From the NCBI GenBank assembly GCA_025201805.1, contig MU619242.1, positions 329,507-393,506 on the forward strand: 64,000 nt of DNA. Direction: 5' to 3'. Shown here one piece after another: positions 24,860-34,560 of this stretch (within the stretch, counting starts at the first letter, position 1; the number at the start of each line of letters is the position of its first letter). This DNA comes from Parasitella parasitica NRRL 2501 (lineage: Eukaryota > Fungi > Mucoromycota). The position numbers and the translations under genes were made by a program. A model generated the notes under the pieces. That model saw only the letters and a list, made by a program, of their open reading frames with translations, was not told where the DNA came from and did no database searches.

Positions 24860-26330
24860 TTATTACTTACTATATAAAACTGTACTTGTACGTTCCAAAG
24901 TACCGTTGTTACTATTTGCATCTGTTGTTACTATTTGCATCTGTTGTTGTTGACATGTTATCTTTAAAGTAACAGTTATTATAAATTATTTCTACTATAT
25001 TGTACAAACGGTCAAAGTATGGAATTAGCTGCGGTAATTCATCAAGTGAAATGGGGAGTCTTAGATTGTTCAATTCAGTCATAATACACACACCATCAAC
25101 ATTTTGACATATATAGAATTGCAGATTGGTGCCTAAAGTTCATGATGATGTAAGTAACCAGTTGCCAGACAATATATTTATCGGTCTACAAAGTATACAA
25201 CTTACCAATAGCCATTACTTGGAAATTTTATTTAGGCTGTATTTGGAAAGGGCAGTTTTACCAAAGATCCCCAAACGATGCAAATCAACATTTATCTTCT
25301 GGCGATTGGTAGCATAATCAATGGTTTTTACTTGGACATAGCCAATAGTTTCACGATCATTTTCAATACAACCATCTGGTCTATTATTAGTGGCTGCTGG
25401 TTGGTCTTCATTACTATTGCAGCTGAAAGTGATTGTGTTAATCCATTTAAAAAGCATGTTATCGTCTTCATTACTATCAAACAAGGATTGAAAGAATGGT
25501 TGCAAATAACGAGCGCACAACTCATGCTCTTTTACTTTCTTCTGTTGTGTGTTGCTCGGAAGGGTTTCAACTAACGCTTTGAAGCATAGCAACAACTTGA
25601 CAAGTATTGGATCCATATCTTCAGTTAAAGTATTACTAACCTTTTTCAAGGCATTGATCTTGGTCAACACTCCGTTGCTGAGATCGTTGGCAAATTTAAA
25701 TTTTAGGCTTTCAAAAATATTCTTTCGAACGCTGTCAAAGCTTGTGGTTTTGAAATAATTATCCAATTCAGCGTCATAGACATATTTTTTAACTATCAAA
25801 ATATTTGACAAGGCAAGGATTTGTTGAAGATTGGACTCGTAACTGAGCAATTTTGAGTCGTTGATACTGTTAAAAGTGTCAAGTTTGAAATCAAAAAATG
25901 CCTTTTGAAGACTACTGTGATTCCTGCTGCTGTTACTGACACAGTTTTCTCTAATCAGACTCTTTGCTTCATCTAAAGTTATCGTTTCTACACTCTCAGC
26001 GACTGAAGAGCTGCGATTCATAGATACAATACTATGGTTGGCAGGAGAGGTACTTGCAGCGCTTGTTGCTTTAGTGCATGAGTCAATGTTGATTTCGTTA
26101 TTTTGATTACATTGATCTTGAACGTTCTTACGATGAGCCCAGTACTGCTGAGCTTGCTTGCTTCTTTTCCACTTATTGAATTTCGAAGGAACTTGTTCTC
26201 TCTTCTCTTTATCTGAAATGTATTCTGTGATTTCTTTAAATCTTCTGATTGCAGTTGTTTGAGAATACGACTGAAAGAAATCAAAGAAAGACAAATGAGA
26301 TAATGTCATTAGATTTTTTTTTGTAGCCAC
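24860..26330 (-). pseudogene. PD-(D/E)xK restriction-endonuclease-fold protein (Mucorales multigene/Crinkler-like REase type), disrupted
   Basis: EHELCARYLQPFFQSLF..FKW..NRPDGCI..IGYVQVKT..DLHRLGIFGK. A 1-nt frameshift near 25225 restores FQVMAIG|intron|TNLQFY..ELNNLRLPISL. Also a GTG in ATG-like context, ExK changed to QVK, and a 19-bp tandem duplication at ~24906-24943. Confidence 0.7.
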
Positions 26331-26440
26331 GTTGTTTTGCTGAGTTTTCTATTTTGGCGTTGTTTTGTTCGCATGTTGATGGTGTGTGTATATGACTGAA
26401 TTGAACAGTCTAAGACTCCCATTTCACTTGATGAATTACC
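25033..26440. repeat. 70/68-bp inverted repeat pair (25033-25102 and 26373-26440)
   Basis: The reverse complement of the left arm matches the right arm with 1 substitution and two 1-nt deletions. Confidence 0.97.
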
Positions 26441-27138: not shown

Positions 27139-28689
27139 TTTTTTTATCTGTATGATGAATTGTCTTTGTAACTTAAAAATTGAATGCTTTTATATTCAAT
27201 TTGCTTGAGTCAAAGCACGAGGAGCCATGATATTGATTGTATTTTTCTTTCTTCCTTTTGTTCGGATGAGTAGAATACTTTTTAGCTGTCATGATATCTT
27301 CTCTGCTGTGAAATTAAGTGACCCGTGTCGATTGTTATTTTGCAGCATGAGTCCAATGTGCTGCTGCGAAACCTCTGCTTTACTTCAAAAATTGAGAAAT
27401 AAAATTTTGAACATGATGGCTTAATTGCTATTGACTCGCTAATGTACAAATAAAGTAGTATCCGCCTAATACAATGGTCTTATTGTGCTTAGGCTTGACA
27501 AGACCAAAACAAGACACCTTTTGGGGTATATATGGTAAACATAACAGTCATTGTTTATGATTGCCATTGTGATTGTATGTAATTATATTGATAATGCCAA
27601 GAGTTGGTCTGCCATCAGCCTTACAGAGAACCTATCGTTATTTTATAACCTAACCTAATGCCAACTCATATTTGTAAAGCAGCTCGCATCTTGATGACAG
27701 CTGCAACCTCAAACTGATCATTGACAGTGGCGGAGTGCGCAAGACGCTCATTCTCTCTCTTATACCATAAAATAGGGCATTACCATAGTTTGATAGCGAA
27801 TATTAGAAACTGTCTTGCGTCAAATATGGCTATATTACACAAACATATTTTCCAAGAGAATAACCTGCTAATCAAACCACAAATGCTTGTTTTTGTACAT
27901 CAACAATAGGTTTTCATAATTTTCAGCATGCCATGTTGGAGGTTTACAGTCGTTACCTTTTTTTTTTCAAAACGTTTTGGGAGAATAATGATACCCACAC
28001 TTTTGGAACAATATTGAGAAGGACATATCTGGTAGACTTTTTATCCTGAACTGCTGCTTTCGTTGTATCAATAGTATACACTAACAACCTAATATGCATC
28101 GAAGTAGCGTTGGAAGGTATAAACTTATAAGCTCAAAAAAATGACATGAAATCTTCTCAAATCTAAAAGATCCTTTGGTAACATCTATGGGTAATATTGT
28201 CAGTTTCCTAGTTATTAGTATCAATTTCCATATCAGAGCTGGCATTTGATAGGGATTGCAGAACCAGGGCCAGATAGCTCTTACGTTCTCCGTGATTACT
28301 GTTGTTCATTTTATTTTCTACATCTATTTTTCACAAATAACTCTCATTGAGAGTATGCTTATACTCTGACCTTGAGACAGCATTCATCATGTTCACGCAA
28401 CCTGACACGAACAATTTATATTTTTCTTCTTTGTTCGAAATGATACAAATTCTCAATAGCAAAACCACAAAGAGCACAACCAGGAATCAGGGACTTGGTC
28501 AAAACAATATGACGACACCAAGGTGTACAGAGCAGGAACATACGAGCGTTTTTCATTTTTGCTTGAACTGGATACTGTACTCATCGATATCGCTTGTTTT
28601 TATGATGGCTTTTGCATTGTATACACGTTGATTAATAAAAGACAAACATTAACCGGAATTGGAGGGGCCACTTGGGACGATGCCTAACA

Positions 28690-30640
28690 TGAAAGCAATT
28701 ACTTTCAGGACGACAAAAAAAAAAGATAGTTAGTCTCTATTTCCGGTACGCTGCCTTGGAATGTCATCCTGCTGGAGAAAAGCGCCAAAGGATCAATCAC
28801 GAAAGGGGGTGTGTCAGGTGTTGTTCGTGATCTCCAAAAGCCAAGCAAAAAGATTAATTGTAGTGCTAAACTCAAAGTAACCTGTTACAAAAACAATCCT
28901 GGCTATGCAACCTTCATTTATACCGGAGAACATAATCGCGATGTTGGAAGGTTGAATGATTTACAACATTTGCCATTATCGAAAGAAGCAAGAGAACTAA
29001 TTGAGCAACGATTAAGGGAAAACTTCAGCAAAAGGCAAACAAGAATCGCCATCAAGACGAATTACAATAAGTTTATTACAGAGAATCAAGTGCTGGCTGG
29101 CCTTGATAATTCGACTTCTTCCCTGATCCATCAAGATCAAATGGTTCATGCAGATGAGATTCACAACATCTACAAAAAAATCCAAGAAAAATTTTTGTTT
29201 GAAAGCAAGAGACCATAAAACTTTGGCTACAAGAATTATCTTTGCAAAAAGGAAATGTTACCTTTCTGGGCACTGATTTTAACTCTAATTACACCTTTGG
29301 CTTCGTATCTCCATGGCAAAAAGCATTATTGTCTACATCAATATCAATTTGCTTAGATGCAACCCACTGCGTTAAAAGTATCAGCCAAGGTGTCTTGTAT
29401 AGTATTGTGATTAAGCATCCGTATACGAGTACATGATGCCCTGTTGCGTTTATGTACACAATTGATCACTCTTTGCAACCAATAGCAGCCTTTTTACGTT
29501 TTGTAAAAGAACAAATTGCCGTGCCAAACTTACAAAAAATTACAATAGATGTCAGCACTACTGGTACCACTAACGAAGTATTTCCTGAAGTTAGTGTCTA
29601 ATAGTGTTTGTTTCACGTTGCAAGAGCTTGGATGGCAAAGATACGAGATACCATCAAGCTGGGTAGCACGGCTCAGAATCAACAAGTTCACAGGGCGATA
29701 ATTGCACAGTTGAAGAGCATGATGTGGGAAAAGAGTCCAGATGCATTTGTCTTCAAAGTGACAAATTTTCTTGTAATGTTCCATCAATACACAGAATTCT
29801 TGATTTACATGGACACATAATACTTTGCACAAGGAAAGTATCGGCACTGGTGCGCTGCATATCAGCTGCAAATGTTCTCAAACATGGAGACCAATAACTT
29901 CGTTGAAAGTTGGCATAACCAACTAAAAACATTATACCTTAAAAGAAAGCGTAACAGACACATTGGCCGCTTAATTTACATCCTTGTCAATGATATTGAA
30001 CCGGATTTTATCCAGAATACCAATAAAATTTGCTTAAATACACGGAGGATGAGACCTCAAGAGAGAAGATGTCGACATAGAGAAATGGGGGCTGAAGCAA
30101 TCAATGTAGCGATTTTTGAGTTTATGGTTGTGGAGTTGCTCAACGACAGTGAAACTCTCAAATCTGCTATCCAGTTCTCAAAACAAAAGATGTTCAGTAT
30201 GAAATCATCGTCCAAAATGAAGAAATGCGATCATACGCTTGTCAGACTTCCAATGAAACCAAACAGCTTGCAATCATATGCATTTGTTGAAATGTTGGTG
30301 TAGAGACCTCATGGCATATCAAGGTAATATTCTATATAGCCAAAACCCAAAGATTAGCAAGCTAATTTGGTCTAATAGTACCTATCTCTACTGTGCAAAG
30401 AACACCACGAGATACTGCTGTTATCAATCCTTTGCCTCTCCAAACTGCTGATACCAGAATAGATGGCTGTATAGTCAACATCTCATCTGTAATAAATACT
30501 TTGAAATTTGACAACAACATAAACTTGAATGGAGATCAAATCCGGTAGTTACAAACAGCTACAAATATGTTAAGAGGCGTACTTCCTACCACTACTGATA
30601 CAGCTACAAACAGTAATCTTACCACCCAACGAAGATAAGC
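28690..30640 (+). mobile_element. MULE/Mutator transposase pseudogene
   Basis: SKKINCSAKLKV..H (WRKY/FAR1-like), ICLDATH, KITID, CLFHVARAW, TNNFVESWHNQLK, degenerate SWIM finger; several stops and frameshifts. Confidence 0.88.
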
Positions 30641-30751
30641 TATTAAATAAAAATAAAATGCATTTGTTGTAAAAGATAAACGTCATCCACTGACGAATTC
30701 AAGCTCGTCTTATTTTAGGAGGAAATAAGGAATTCGAAAATAACTTTTATT

Positions 30752-30848
30752 ATATAACTGATGATTGCGCCCGCCGCTTGATTACACTCAAAACTCTGTA
30801 ATTTACGCGGAGCAAGTAATAAAAATCTTTAAAAAAAAAAAAAAAAAA
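30752..30848 (+). mobile_element. Short retroposed insert (5'-truncated LINE tail or SINE) with poly(A) and target-site duplication
   Basis: Flanked by AAAATAACTTTTATT at 30737-30751 and 30849-30863; contains AATAAA and an A-tail; shares TTGCGCCCGCCnCTTGA...GCGGAG with the LINE 3' UTR at 44926-44975. Confidence 0.8.
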
Positions 30849-31608
30849 AAAATAACTTTTATTTAAGCTGTAAATTTACTGTATCCGCAAAATAACTCGT
30901 AACTTCTCATCATTTTAAGAATATGGAGATATACAATGATCTACAGTAATGCATTGGTCTTTTATTGTCTAAAACCACATCTATTATGCTATACCTTCTA
31001 GAATAATAATAAATCTTAAATATCCTTAATAGTATTAAGGCTATTTTGTAAAAGTGCCATTTAACAAATTATTAGATAGAGACAATATTAACTTGTGTTT
31101 GCAACTACGTAAAATAAAAAAATTATTTTTATTTAGTCTGTAATACAGGTAGAATAAGACAGTGGTGGTATCATACTCTTTTTATTTATATACAAGGGAT
31201 AACAATTTTGGCCCAAAAGAAAACCTTAAAGTGAAGTCGATTCATCCAGTACTTATGTCCCTCTTCAAATTTCATCAAACCTCCAGAAATGATTGATATT
31301 CTATCCCTAGGTAAAAAGTAGGAAAATATGAGATCCAGCAACAGCATGTCCAACCCAGCCTAATTACCATTAACGAACTTCTTTGAAGAGCTATCACAAC
31401 TTGTAGACCCGAGATCAATAAACGCACCCTTAAGAAGCTTGTAATGTAGATTAGATTCTATTCGCGTTTTGATTGTTCATAATAAAGGTATTCAAAGAGG
31501 TCGTACATATATTAAAAAAGGGACTAGCTAGAATATCTCCTACCAAAATTCCAGTATAAACTCTCAAAGTCTATTGCACTACAGAGCATCAAGGCGTTTT
31601 CAAGAGAC

Positions 31609-32021
31609 AAATGTTATTATGCGAGCCGCTTCTAATATTCGATTGTATAAAGAAGAGAATAAAAGAAAGTTTTGCGTCACTGGCATGGGAAGCCAACCAA
31701 GCTCTGCAAAATAACCTGACCAGATACATACATCACAACAAAGTCCCAAAGATGTAAGTAGCCGTGTGTCACTCCTTCTTCATATCGGAACCAAGTCAGG
31801 TCTCTTCGTCTAGATGCCTCTTATTTTGATGAACATTATTATGCGAGCCGCTTCTAATATTCGATTGTATAAAGAAGAGAATAAAAGAAAGTTCTGCGTC
31901 ACTGGCATGGGAAGCCAACCGAGCTCTGCAAAATAATCTGACCAGATACATACATCACAACAAAGTCCCAAAGATGTAAGTAGCCGTGTGTCATTCCTTC
32001 TTCATATCGGAACCAAGTCAG
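31609..32021. repeat. Two direct 191-bp units (31609-31799, 31831-32021), each enclosed by inverted arms
   Basis: The 186-bp cores differ by 4 transitions. Arms: A/A' 31583-31608/31800-31821, B/B' 31820-31830/32022-32032, outer C/C' 31571-31584/32036-32050. Confidence 0.95.
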
Positions 32022-32560
32022 ATCAAAATAAGGAGCTGTAGTGCTAATAGGGTATGCGGTAATTCAGAGCTGATAAGCCATAACTACTGTGTATTCATTT
32101 AATGACCAAAAAGTGGATCGAGGAGTACAGTTAAAAACAAAAGTAAAAGTGAGTTAGATACTTTGGCCTGACATTTATATATTTGCTGATTAGTTCATTC
32201 TATAAAGGAATAAACAGCTTTAGAGCAAATTAATCCATAATGAGTACTTACAAGGAAACTCCAATAAAGCATTTGTTAATTTAGCTTCCAAACAGCAGCG
32301 CTATAGAAAATCTAAACAAAACAAACTTATTAGTTATACTCAAACATGACAATAATTAAAAGCCAAACGAAGGAGATGCAAGATTTTTTTCAATAAAGAA
32401 ATAATACCTCAAACCGGAGATTTAAAAGTCAAACACGTATATGGATACGTCACCCTTTGCTGAACGTTCATTTATCAGTCATTCATTTTATTCACCAAAT
32501 AAATAATCTCTTGTGAGAGCCTTATATTAATTATATAATGCCGAATACGCTTATAACATC

Positions 32561-34192
32561 ATGGATTATTCATACAGATTAAAACACGACAACCCTTCAT
32601 TTAAATATTTTTCTGACCATCCTATTATCGAATGGTCTTTCGCAAATTTCACCCGTTCATTTGATGACGGCCAAATAAAACCAACAAACTTTACAAAAAT
32701 TAAAAACACCTATATATCCAAAATGAAAGACATTCAAAAGTTAAATGATGTACCGTATTTCGTGAAGGAAGAAGTCCGACGCTTATTATCCTTAATAGAA
32801 TCCCTTGAAGAAGAGTCTTCAAGCTTCAGTGTTAACATTACAGCACATGATTCTAACATCTACAATGCTTCTGTCTCAGGTACTCTCAATTTTAACCAGC
32901 AGCAGCAATCAGCAGAAAGAGCTCAGCAGCAAAAAGATGTCGAGTCTGTACTAAACATGGAGCATTCTGCTTCTGGGAAGAGCGATGAAGAGAAAAGTGA
33001 TGAAGAAGAGCGCGATGAAGAGGACAAAATTCCCTCCGATTTATCAATCGACCACCATCCAAACCGTACTTGCGAGTACAGTCTTAAAATCATAGGTTCA
33101 GATGAGGACAAAGAAGAAATAAACTCAACCAGACCTGCGAAGACTTCAAATGAGTCAAAACGGATGTTAAATGATATCTGTATCTCTGATTTATGCCTTC
33201 GTTTTAAGGAGGCATCCTTTAAATTGGCTAAAAACACTGATCCTTCACGACTATCTGATATTCGTCTTCTCACCTTGAATGATATTTATATATTTGATAG
33301 AAACTTTTTGTCTTCTGTTAGCAAATATTTTTCAACTAAAGTCCACACCATACTCAAACCTACTTTATCTTTTGATGCTTATCTCCCTACAAGAGGCTTA
33401 AATTGTTACGACTGGTGCATGGATATCGAAGTATCACCTCCCGTTGATTATATCACTTCAATAACGCTGTGTGCTGATTTACTTAAAGAAGCCTGAGACA
33501 GTAAAAATTTCTTGGATATACACACTGCTCAGATTTTGACCCAGATCCTCCCAGTTCTAGTCAATGGTCCTCCTGAAGACTCAACTGAAGATAGTTACGT
33601 ACACTATTACCTCTCACCACTACTGTCATCGGTCTTTTCAACTGATCCTCTGTTAAAGATGAAATGGGCTAACGGCAAATTAATGAACAATCAAAATGAA
33701 TACAAACCTGATTTTCTGGTATACAATACCTCCGGCAGCAAAAGGTGTGTAATTATTATTGCAGAGTTCAAACCTACCGAGAAAAACTCGTATGTTGAAT
33801 CAGACCTGGTGAAGCTTGCCCAACAAATGAAGGTGACCTTAAACGAAATGATTATGAATGGAGTTTCAAAACCTGAAGTCTGTGGTGTTCACTGTGAAGG
33901 TGAAAATGTGTATACGTATATCATGGACCTCCCCTCTCCCAAGCTCTACAGATTAGCCAATGCTTCTAAAATTAAACTCTTCAAAAGCTTGGATCAAATC
34001 TCGCTTCTCCCAAGTGTGATTACACATCTGTTATGTTTGAAGAATGTTGCCTCAAAGACTGCTACCAAGGTTGAAACTGCTTCGCTGTATAGTTACAACA
34101 ATTTAAAACGTCCAGCTCCAAATCCACCTGAAGAATGGTTATCAAGTGTAAAGGCTGTCCTCTCCCGTTTACCCAAAAAACAAAAGAAATAA
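32561..34192 (+). pseudogene. Second PD-(D/E)xK nuclease-fold gene with one in-frame TGA at 33494-33496
   Basis: The two ORFs are in the same frame. EDSYVHYYLSPLLSSVF..KWAN..YKPDFLV..IAEFKP..SDLVKLAQQMK..VCGVHCEG; C-terminal PKKQKK NLS-like motif. Confidence 0.75.
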
Positions 34193-34239
34193 ACACTATA
34201 TCCTATTATATTGTATTAATTAATAATAAATTCATGTGT

Positions 34240-34560
34240 GTCTTAAGTAGCTAGTAAACTTCCTGTAAACTCTTAGAGACTTCATCCTAAATTTTTGGAT
34301 AAAGAATATTTATAATTGCTTATTAGAAGCTGGCCAAATTATTTGTAAATTGGAGTTCAATCATTTGACCAAGTTAGTCCCATTTTTCTGGGAAACTTAA
34401 TCTCACACAAGTGTTCAAAATAATTCAAAAAGTCGGGCAGAGTTTTCAAAAATTCGGTACATTGAGAGTGGAAGCACTGTAGGTTATCAGAATGCGCCAA
34501 TTGGGACGTTCCTAATTTTTGAAGAGTTAATTGGCACCGGAGGCTGTATGAAAACTCCTC
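34240..34560 (-). mobile_element. Short MULE transposase relic
   Basis: EFLKTLPDFLNYFE resembles the helix preceding the TNN..ESWH motif of MULEs; highly degraded. Confidence 0.35.

Follow-up and report, generated by a model that had tools for sequence, protein, structure and literature searches.

A candidate twin-domain structured RNA upstream of a predicted nuclease gene in a Tc1/mariner-like element of Parasitella parasitica

Introduction

Modules that combine a nuclease with an RNA, as in TnpB, IscB, Fanzor and IS110, have reshaped the view of selfish DNA and have yielded genome-editing tools. All nuclease-plus-RNA modules of transposons known to us use RuvC, HNH or DEDD enzymes. In the OMEGA/Fanzor systems the gene for a TnpB-like RuvC nuclease and a structured non-coding RNA travel together in a DNA transposon as cargo other than the transposase, and the omegaRNA overlaps the 3' end of the gene and the end of the transposon, its guide being derived from outside the element. 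Fanzor1 reportedly also occurs in Tc1/mariner elements. Another arrangement is found in the bacterial type III toxin-antitoxin systems (ToxIN), where a mobile element carries near-identical, directly repeated structured RNA units of 34-36 nt just ahead of a nuclease gene and in its orientation; the endoribonuclease ToxN cuts its own RNA, and the units bind and inhibit ToxN. Fungi also harbor selfish elements with a predicted nuclease domain. Spok of Podospora is said to be a nuclease-type killer on a giant transposon, the antidote being the kinase domain of the same protein.

Two further systems are of interest for their architecture. Tandem-aptamer RNAs such as the glycine riboswitch, which acts in cis on bacterial mRNA, contain two homologous but diverged domains in one RNA, joined by flanking and linker helices. 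The inverted terminal repeats (ITRs) of AAV and other parvoviruses are terminal DNA hairpins of 125-145 nt with Rep-binding and nicking sites, in which nested palindromes form a T-shaped three-way junction.

The element described here lies in a 64,000-nt stretch of the genome of Parasitella parasitica NRRL 2501 (assembly GCA_025201805.1, contig MU619242.1, positions 329,507 to 393,506), in the following called the window. The original prediction, made from the letters of the window, had described two near-identical 191-nt units sitting on the axes of nested palindromes upstream of a nuclease gene. The following analysis traces the element through this and other genomes, assesses its fold by covariation, and compares its association with the downstream gene and with a transposon to the systems above.

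Results

Architecture of the twin element. Direct reading of the sequence gives the order of parts C-A-U1-A'-B-U2-B'-C' (Table 1), in exact agreement with the layout that had been described for arms and units. A repeat search returned the two units as a direct repeat (189 nt, 97% identity, spacing 222) and the B/B' arms as an 11-nt match (100%, 191 nt apart). Across all 191 columns the units are 96.3% identical, the initial 5 nt being different. Stem A is longer than originally described, as GCATC/GATGC and AGGCG/CGTCT also pair across U1, and the 31-nt linker between the units is base-paired to the two flanks over almost its whole length. For either strand the minimum-energy fold is a three-way junction in which the arms close the two unit copies, supporting the T-shape proposed for the locus. 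Likewise supported is the remark that two units with different arms cannot be explained by simple tandem duplication, and the start of the downstream gene at 510 nt from the element agrees with the distance of about 510 bp given before.

Table 1. Coordinates of the twin element, the neighboring features and the related loci (positions without a contig name are those of the window).
Feature	Position	Strand	Description
Outer stem C, 5' arm	31571-31584	+	CTATTGCACTACAG; partner 32036-32050
Stem A extended, 5' arm	31585-31608	+	GCATC, AGGCG and AAGAGAC with internal loops between; partner 31800-31817
Inner arm A	31602-31608	+	AAGAGAC
Unit U1	31609-31799	+	191-nt multi-helix domain; covariance model R1, 209 bits
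Linker	31800-31830	+	A' 31800-31806 (GTCTCTT), A' extension 31807-31817, B 31820-31830
Inner arm B	31820-31830	+	CTTATTTTGAT
Unit U2	31831-32021	+	191-nt multi-helix domain; covariance model R1, 208 bits
Stem B, 3' arm B'	32022-32032	+	ATCAAAATAAG; 100% complementary to 31820-31830
Outer stem C, 3' arm C'	32036-32050	+	CTGTAGTGCTAATAG; partner 31571-31584
Nuclease-like gene	32561-34192	+	Fast-evolving N-terminal part 32561-33493; C-terminal PD-(D/E)xK domain (predicted) 33512-34189
Right terminal inverted repeat, Tc1/mariner-like	34291-34481	+	Ends ...GGAAGCACTG + TA
Paralogous block	30945-34203 = C4:371110-367871	+	Upstream region, twin RNA, spacer and gene; ends at the gene's stop codon
P. 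parasitica C6	this window		Twin; upstream of and co-oriented with gene
P. parasitica C4	C4:370026-370446		Twin; upstream of and co-oriented with gene
P. parasitica C69	C69:43926-44339		Twin; upstream of and co-oriented with gene
P. parasitica C40	C40:70201-70593		Divergent twin
P. parasitica C21			Single unit
P. parasitica C90			Single unit
P. parasitica C19			Truncated; remnant upstream of and co-oriented with gene
Gilbertella persicaria	L034 4740-5157		Twin; upstream of and co-oriented with gene
Rhizopus stolonifer	L032 4056-4249		Single unit; upstream of and co-oriented with gene
Backusella circina			Contig begins inside a unit; upstream of and co-oriented with gene
Mucor circinelloides			Truncated remnant; upstream of and co-oriented with gene
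JGI contig (L043)			Truncated remnant; upstream of and co-oriented with gene

Fold of the unit and covariation. An RNAalifold consensus of seven loci, represented by one unit each, contains 44 pairs in 7 helices, and 16 of these pairs show compensatory double changes. When 11 units are considered, 89.7% of the cells at paired positions are indeed paired, as compared to 32-36% after sliding the partners by 1-3 columns; 17 of the 44 pairs are altered on both sides, as compared to 0-3 in the slid controls, and none of 500 shuffles matched the observed pairing values. The unit consists of two sub-domains. One is the long helix P1 (14 bp), enclosing one hairpin whose loop, CAUGGGAAA, is conserved and another containing AAGAAGA; the other is a junction closed by CUGAC in mid-unit and GUCAG at the 3' end of the unit, an invariant 5-bp helix, which bears P2 (conserved 16-nt loop ACAACAGAGUCCCAAA) and P5 (loop UUCUUCAUAU), both loops being very conserved. 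Even the two units of the window differ in a manner that respects this fold, as G5-C108 of U1 is replaced by A5-U108 in U2, a compensated swap at the terminal pair of P1, and the remaining three internal differences all fall into unpaired columns. Complementarity between loops (UGGGA/UCCCA and GAAGA/UCUUC) is kept to 96%, too invariant for covariation and equaled in 91 of 500 shuffles, and might reflect tertiary loop-loop contacts.

The stems that hold the units together covary as well. Over the four twin loci 92.7% of the scaffold-stem cells are paired (29-49% in slid controls) and 7 of 28 pairs have changed on both sides, with none of 500 shuffles performing as well. Three of these seven double changes, all compensatory, are found in B/B' of the C69 copy, and in the stem A extension 4 of 10 pairs are double-changed (alignment A7). 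Pairing of stem C is preserved with other sequences in C4 (GCAAUACAG/CUGUAUUGC), in Gilbertella (CAUUGUAAU/AUUACAAUG) and in C69 (UUGACC/GGUCAA), and the divergent twin C40 has the same architecture with an unrelated flanking stem sequence (TGTAATAGAC/GTCTATTACA). The linker is identical in the window and in C4 and deviates in Gilbertella at 1 of 31 nt, though the units differ by about 20%. By these sequence comparisons the junction scaffold is shown to be the best-conserved part of the element. Since base pairing is maintained by compensatory changes, the alignments point to a selected single-strand fold, almost certainly an RNA. As to the strand, G.U and A.C combinations in the unit helices are about equally frequent (about 6 each, with the decayed C90 copy omitted), and single units fold no more stably than their shuffles in either orientation (z +0.2 to -1.6). 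Two G.U pairs in the scaffold and one in a loop slightly favor the + strand; the stem A extension of both C6 and C4 has a + strand G.U pair.

Copies in this and other genomes. Searches of the 32.8-Mb genome (450 contigs) by sequence and with the covariance model R1 yielded 5-7 loci in P. parasitica, intact or decayed, and no unit anywhere outside the scaffold. In other species, copies were sought ahead of genes homologous to the nuclease-like gene and were found in four further genera (Table 1); in Pilobolus, Phycomyces, R. arrhizus, M. mucedo, P0009 and P0011 the RNA was absent or the contig too short, and P0001 is a short Logan contig that starts within the nuclease-like gene. Pattern scans of metagenomes revealed no further copies, the first giving 0 matches and the next 32 chance matches to the 19-mer only. 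When this genome is compared with Gilbertella, non-coding conservation is limited to 31573-32031, which is the element itself. The homologous copies in this genome and in other genera, together with covariation far above shuffled and slid controls, argue that the twin element did not arise by chance. In Rfam no family was matched, the best hit being the sR60 C/D snoRNA on the minus strand at 19.8 bits (threshold 50, E 0.26); six related loci gave none at gathering score, and no description of such an element was found in the literature. The twin element belongs to a family, so far undescribed, of single-strand structured elements that are almost certainly RNA. Motifs of C/D and H/ACA snoRNAs, U-snRNAs, SL RNA and hammerhead ribozymes are not conserved on reading by eye, in line with the empty Rfam result.

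Units are 96-99% identical within a locus and 56-84% identical between loci, which indicates that U1 and U2 undergo concerted evolution, with the closing stems apparently setting the limits of homogenization. In its first 4-5 nt each unit has a sequence specific to its position in the twin, and this is consistent across loci. Such position-specific unit starts and the near-invariant linker indicate, at the level of sequence, that the twin is the ancestral arrangement in the mucoralean genera. The single-unit loci C21, C90 and R. stolonifer read A-U-B', the order expected as product of recombination between U1 and U2, and are most simply seen as deletions of this origin.

These data also bear on several explanations that had been offered for the locus. 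The element was suggested to be a palindrome-targeting mini-element. Mobile elements that target palindromes or REPs, IS1397-like elements or MITEs for example, should have copies at unrelated sites, each with its own flanks, and leave empty target sites elsewhere. Every copy found in the genome-wide search resides instead in one and the same homologous scaffold. There are no empty A palindromes in the genome and a single B-like palindrome, equal to the control count, and only three junctions of this type exist in the genome, so the unit does not qualify as a mobile element in its own right. A one-off template-switch product is contradicted by the same linker in Gilbertella. The 31-aa open reading frame noted in each unit is present and both differences between its copies are synonymous, but it is not coding, since other loci have CTG in place of the ATG and carry indels of 1, 2 and 12 nt. 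Similarly, the 46-nt GTAAGT...CAG segment exists, but not as an intron: other copies read GCAAGT, GCAAGC or GCTAGC, and GUCAG belongs to the helix with CUGAC. With start, frame and splice sites not conserved among copies, a micro-ORF or spliced exon was rejected. A protein gene on the minus strand to the left of or across the twin was discarded as well, as its candidate exons run into stops or frameshifts and lack conservation in Gilbertella. The RNA may be released through cleavage of the RNase III type, and it may consist of a scaffold with a variable part.

The downstream gene. The nuclease-like gene of the window contains an in-frame TGA at 33494-33496, a premature stop at a position where homologues have a conserved Cys. 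Its C-terminal 226 residues bear a D...ExK signature with E85 invariant and D67 and K87 nearly so among 30 homologues. An AlphaFold (AF2) model with pLDDT 71 has a strand and helix order that fits the alpha-beta-beta-beta-alpha-beta core of the PD-(D/E)xK superfamily, and its structural matches in VIA-align are headed by BpuSI (Z 11.3) and the nuclease domain of DrdV (Z 11.0), followed by more REase-fold proteins. Judged from this model, the linked gene belongs to the PD-(D/E)xK superfamily and encodes a predicted nuclease. Pfam contains no family for the gene, and the N-terminal half alone is likewise without a match. All protein relatives are from Mucorales, about 12-15 of them in this genome. 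Between the proteins of C6 and C4 identity is 48% in the N-terminal half and 73% in the nuclease domain.

Linkage of RNA and gene. At 9 of the 12 RNA loci the unit precedes the gene by 0.5-2 kb in the same orientation, the distance from twin to open reading frame being a constant 0.5-0.8 kb in intact loci; the other three (C21, C90 and C40) have no gene. A paralogue of the gene on C177 (45% identity) is preceded at about 1 kb by an unrelated-looking twin of 178-nt units, 99% alike at a spacing of 211, with a B-type stem of its own (TAAATAC/GTATTTA). Neither unit nor twin was found in the 2-6 kb (depending on the locus) that precede the homologues from Pilobolus, Phycomyces, R. arrhizus and M. 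mucedo (50-63% identity), or upstream of about 8 paralogues in this genome, and the RNA is thus not obligatory for the gene family. Copies, covariation and co-oriented loci together support what had been proposed, a structured non-coding RNA associated with the nuclease-like gene downstream, and we consider it very probable that a selected structured RNA is linked to a nuclease module.

Transposon context. The terminal inverted repeat (TIR) to the right of the gene is 80-88% identical to the TA-flanked TIRs of 1.7-kb elements elsewhere in the genome, whose inverted ends read CTGTGCTTCCACTC...GAGTGGAAGCACAG and one of which, the C187 copy on which the assignment depends, encodes a DDE_3 transposase (E 3e-13). 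In Backusella and R. stolonifer the same repeat (126-190 nt) stands behind the gene, and at C4 it precedes the module in inverted form. Only the decayed M. circinelloides copy has TIRs on both sides of the module; C6 keeps the right and C4 the left one. Between the twin RNA and the right TIR lie about 2.4 kb, and the autonomous copies of about 1.7 kb are devoid of units. Since the repeat at the module matches the TIRs of a family with a DDE_3-encoding copy, sequence comparison shows RNA and nuclease-like gene as the apparent cargo of a non-autonomous Tc1/mariner (DDE_3) element.

Discussion

What could be the function of a twin RNA next to a nuclease gene? The best reading of the data is that of an RNA carried as transposon cargo and serving as partner or controller of a probably dimeric nuclease, a proposition for which we see the chances as evenly balanced. 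In this reading the element would be transcribed into a separate RNA of about 480 nt, the gene's own sense being the more likely one. As restriction-type nucleases usually work as dimers, the encoded nuclease is by analogy probably dimeric too, and each of the two equal domains of the RNA would then bind one protomer. Binding of the RNA may restrain or assemble the nuclease, the RNA acting as antidote or controller of a selfish module, and fast, coupled drift of both domains and of the N-terminal half of the protein would keep the RNA specific to its own nuclease. Action of the RNA in trans on the nuclease protein is put forward tentatively. That the transposon carries a two-part selfish module, in which a REase-fold nuclease is joined by a twin-domain RNA that binds its dimer as antidote or specificity cofactor, is an idea of doubtful standing.

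Alternatively, the twin could be part of a long 5' untranslated region or an upstream exon of the nuclease gene and control its translation, stability or splicing in cis. The same strand order and the constant distance to the open reading frame in intact loci are what such an arrangement would produce, a GTATGY-like motif directly after C' in several loci offers a possible splice donor on the + strand, and the two scaffold G.U pairs slightly favor that strand. However, it would be unusual for a leader to be at least 1 kb long and to contain many upstream ATGs, a block resembling TATAAAGG between twin and open reading frame in C6 and R. stolonifer would place the twin before the promoter (albeit the block is not conserved in Gilbertella), and twin or single RNA loci survive without the gene at C40, C21 and C90, so that we regard control in cis as rather unlikely. 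The RNA might also serve the transposon or the host, be it as precursor of small RNAs for RNAi, as decoy, or as antisense or intron-borne RNA from the minus strand. The location within a Tc1/mariner-type element, counts of G.U and A.C and z-scores that do not single out a strand, and a GTAAGTAC block on the minus strand, some 200 nt further right and conserved in C6, C4, C21 and Gilbertella, would agree with such a role, but stems of 7-15 bp are too short for Dicer-type duplexes, autonomous copies of the transposon family, at about 1.7 kb, are too short for the twin, no unit was found in them or elsewhere outside this scaffold, and the minus-strand exon models near the twin are neither open nor conserved on reading by eye. 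Service to transposon or host therefore appears quite improbable.

A cruciform or T-shaped hairpin acting as DNA in transposition, replication or recombination would account for the perfect palindromic flanks and the likeness to parvoviral ITRs, and Watson-Crick covariation is by itself strand-symmetric. The 191-nt 'loops', however, are multi-branched with long-range covarying helices, a trait of single strands; in addition, the element is internal rather than terminal and tolerates G.U pairs, and we know of no single-stranded intermediate in Tc1/mariner transposition, leaving little room for a structure at the level of DNA. No greater probability attaches to a functionless relic, that is, a tandem duplicate in decaying transposon cargo homogenized by gene conversion. 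The many truncated or gene-less copies (C19, C21, C90, L038 and L043) and the stop codon in the local gene speak for decay, but 24 pairs with compensatory changes, an architecture that persists across genera and in the divergent C40, and a linker that stays near-invariant while the units drift speak against it.

How does the proposed RNA partner of the nuclease compare to the known systems? Like OMEGA/Fanzor, the module joins a structured non-coding RNA to a nuclease gene, both being cargo, distinct from the transposase, of a DNA transposon. Unlike in those systems the nuclease fold is predicted to be PD-(D/E)xK, the RNA is internal and lies upstream of the gene, its architecture is that of twin domains, and the twin shows no locus-specific guide, as differences between loci represent homologous drift and are not derived from the flanks. 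The locus resembles ToxIN in that, on a mobile element, a nuclease gene is preceded by near-identical, directly repeated units in the same orientation, an arrangement found at C6, C4, C69 and Gilbertella and, with the second type of unit, at C177. It differs in having two 191-nt domains in a three-way junction, in residing in a eukaryote and in the predicted PD-(D/E)xK fold of its nuclease, which is unlike that of ToxN. The domains of the glycine riboswitch are similarly joined, but have diverged, whereas those of the twin element are 96-99% identical. Resemblance to the AAV ITR, as originally noted, holds for the T-shape and for nothing beyond it, since here the element is internal, each arm has a folded insert of 191 nt and no HUH/Rep gene is nearby. 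Spok, finally, shares the status of a fungal selfish element with a predicted nuclease domain, but involves no RNA and has no sequence relation to the twin module.

The pairing of a twin RNA with a restriction-enzyme-like nuclease gene has not been described before. The R1 model, the alignments and the intact Gilbertella locus provide material for direct tests. If true, the coupling of an RNA to a REase-fold nuclease within a Tc1/mariner element of a eukaryote would make a new combination, and if the RNA were an antidote, eukaryotes would have their first RNA-antitoxin-like system. Function aside, the twin elements represent a well-supported new family of large structured RNAs in early-diverging fungi, with an internal two-fold repeat of an unusual kind that concerted evolution maintains.

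Other twins and the upstream interval

The RNA family of the window twin is also represented by a divergent twin on contig C40, whose closing stems, TGTAATAGAC/GTCTATTACA, are unrelated in sequence to those of the window twin and which has no gene of the nuclease-like family downstream. A second kind of twin, on C177, is not detected by R1, the covariance model of the 191-nt unit family; its units have inverted flanks of their own (TAAATAC/GTATTTA), and a paralogue of the nuclease-like gene, at 45% identity, follows some 1 kb downstream. Of the conserved blocks between twin and ORF, CTATAAAGGAATAA is TATA-like on the plus strand and GTACTTACAAGGAAACTCCAATAAAGCATTTG reads on the minus strand as a GTAAGTAC splice donor.

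Features in the window and at related loci (G000, this genome; C-numbers, its contigs; L-numbers, stretches taken from contigs)
Feature	Position	Strand	Details
'Nuclease gene 1' of the original prediction	window 25215-26330	minus	ORF
ORFs with MULE/FAR1-like transposase motifs	window 28347-30743		e.g. NNFVESWHNQLK
Two short high-copy repeats	window 30750-30935		~98 and ~87 nt; numerous matches at 92-100% identity, to the ends of contigs or to short contigs
Conserved blocks, twin-to-ORF interval	window 32201-32275, with counterparts at homologous positions in C4, C21, R. stolonifer, Gilbertella		CTATAAAGGAATAA and GTACTTACAAGGAAACTCCAATAAAGCATTTG
Divergent twin	L092 (G000:C40:70201-70593)	minus	R1 E ~0.003 per unit
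Second twin kind	L014:3645-4033 (G000:C177)	minus	178-nt unit present twice (99% identity between the copies; spacing 211)
TA-flanked Tc1/mariner-like copy, 1.66 kb	interior at L096:801-1925 (G000:C14)		readable coding part, C-terminal 56 codons only; interior N

Surroundings and state of the module

The ORF originally called nuclease gene 1 is enclosed by a 30-nt inverted repeat (97% complementary; window 25054-25083 and 26391-26420) and was not matched in searches with the gene-2 protein at E <= 0.001. Closer to the module, the MULE/FAR1-like insertion, of which window 29500-30740 has at least five copies on other contigs at about 90% identity, probably took the place of the left end of the module-carrying Tc1/mariner-like element. 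A poly(A) run (window 30825-30850) adjoins the two high-copy repeats. Within the nuclease-like gene an in-frame TGA stands at window 33494-33496, in a column occupied by a conserved Cys in 30 homologues; the window copy of this gene is probably inactive.
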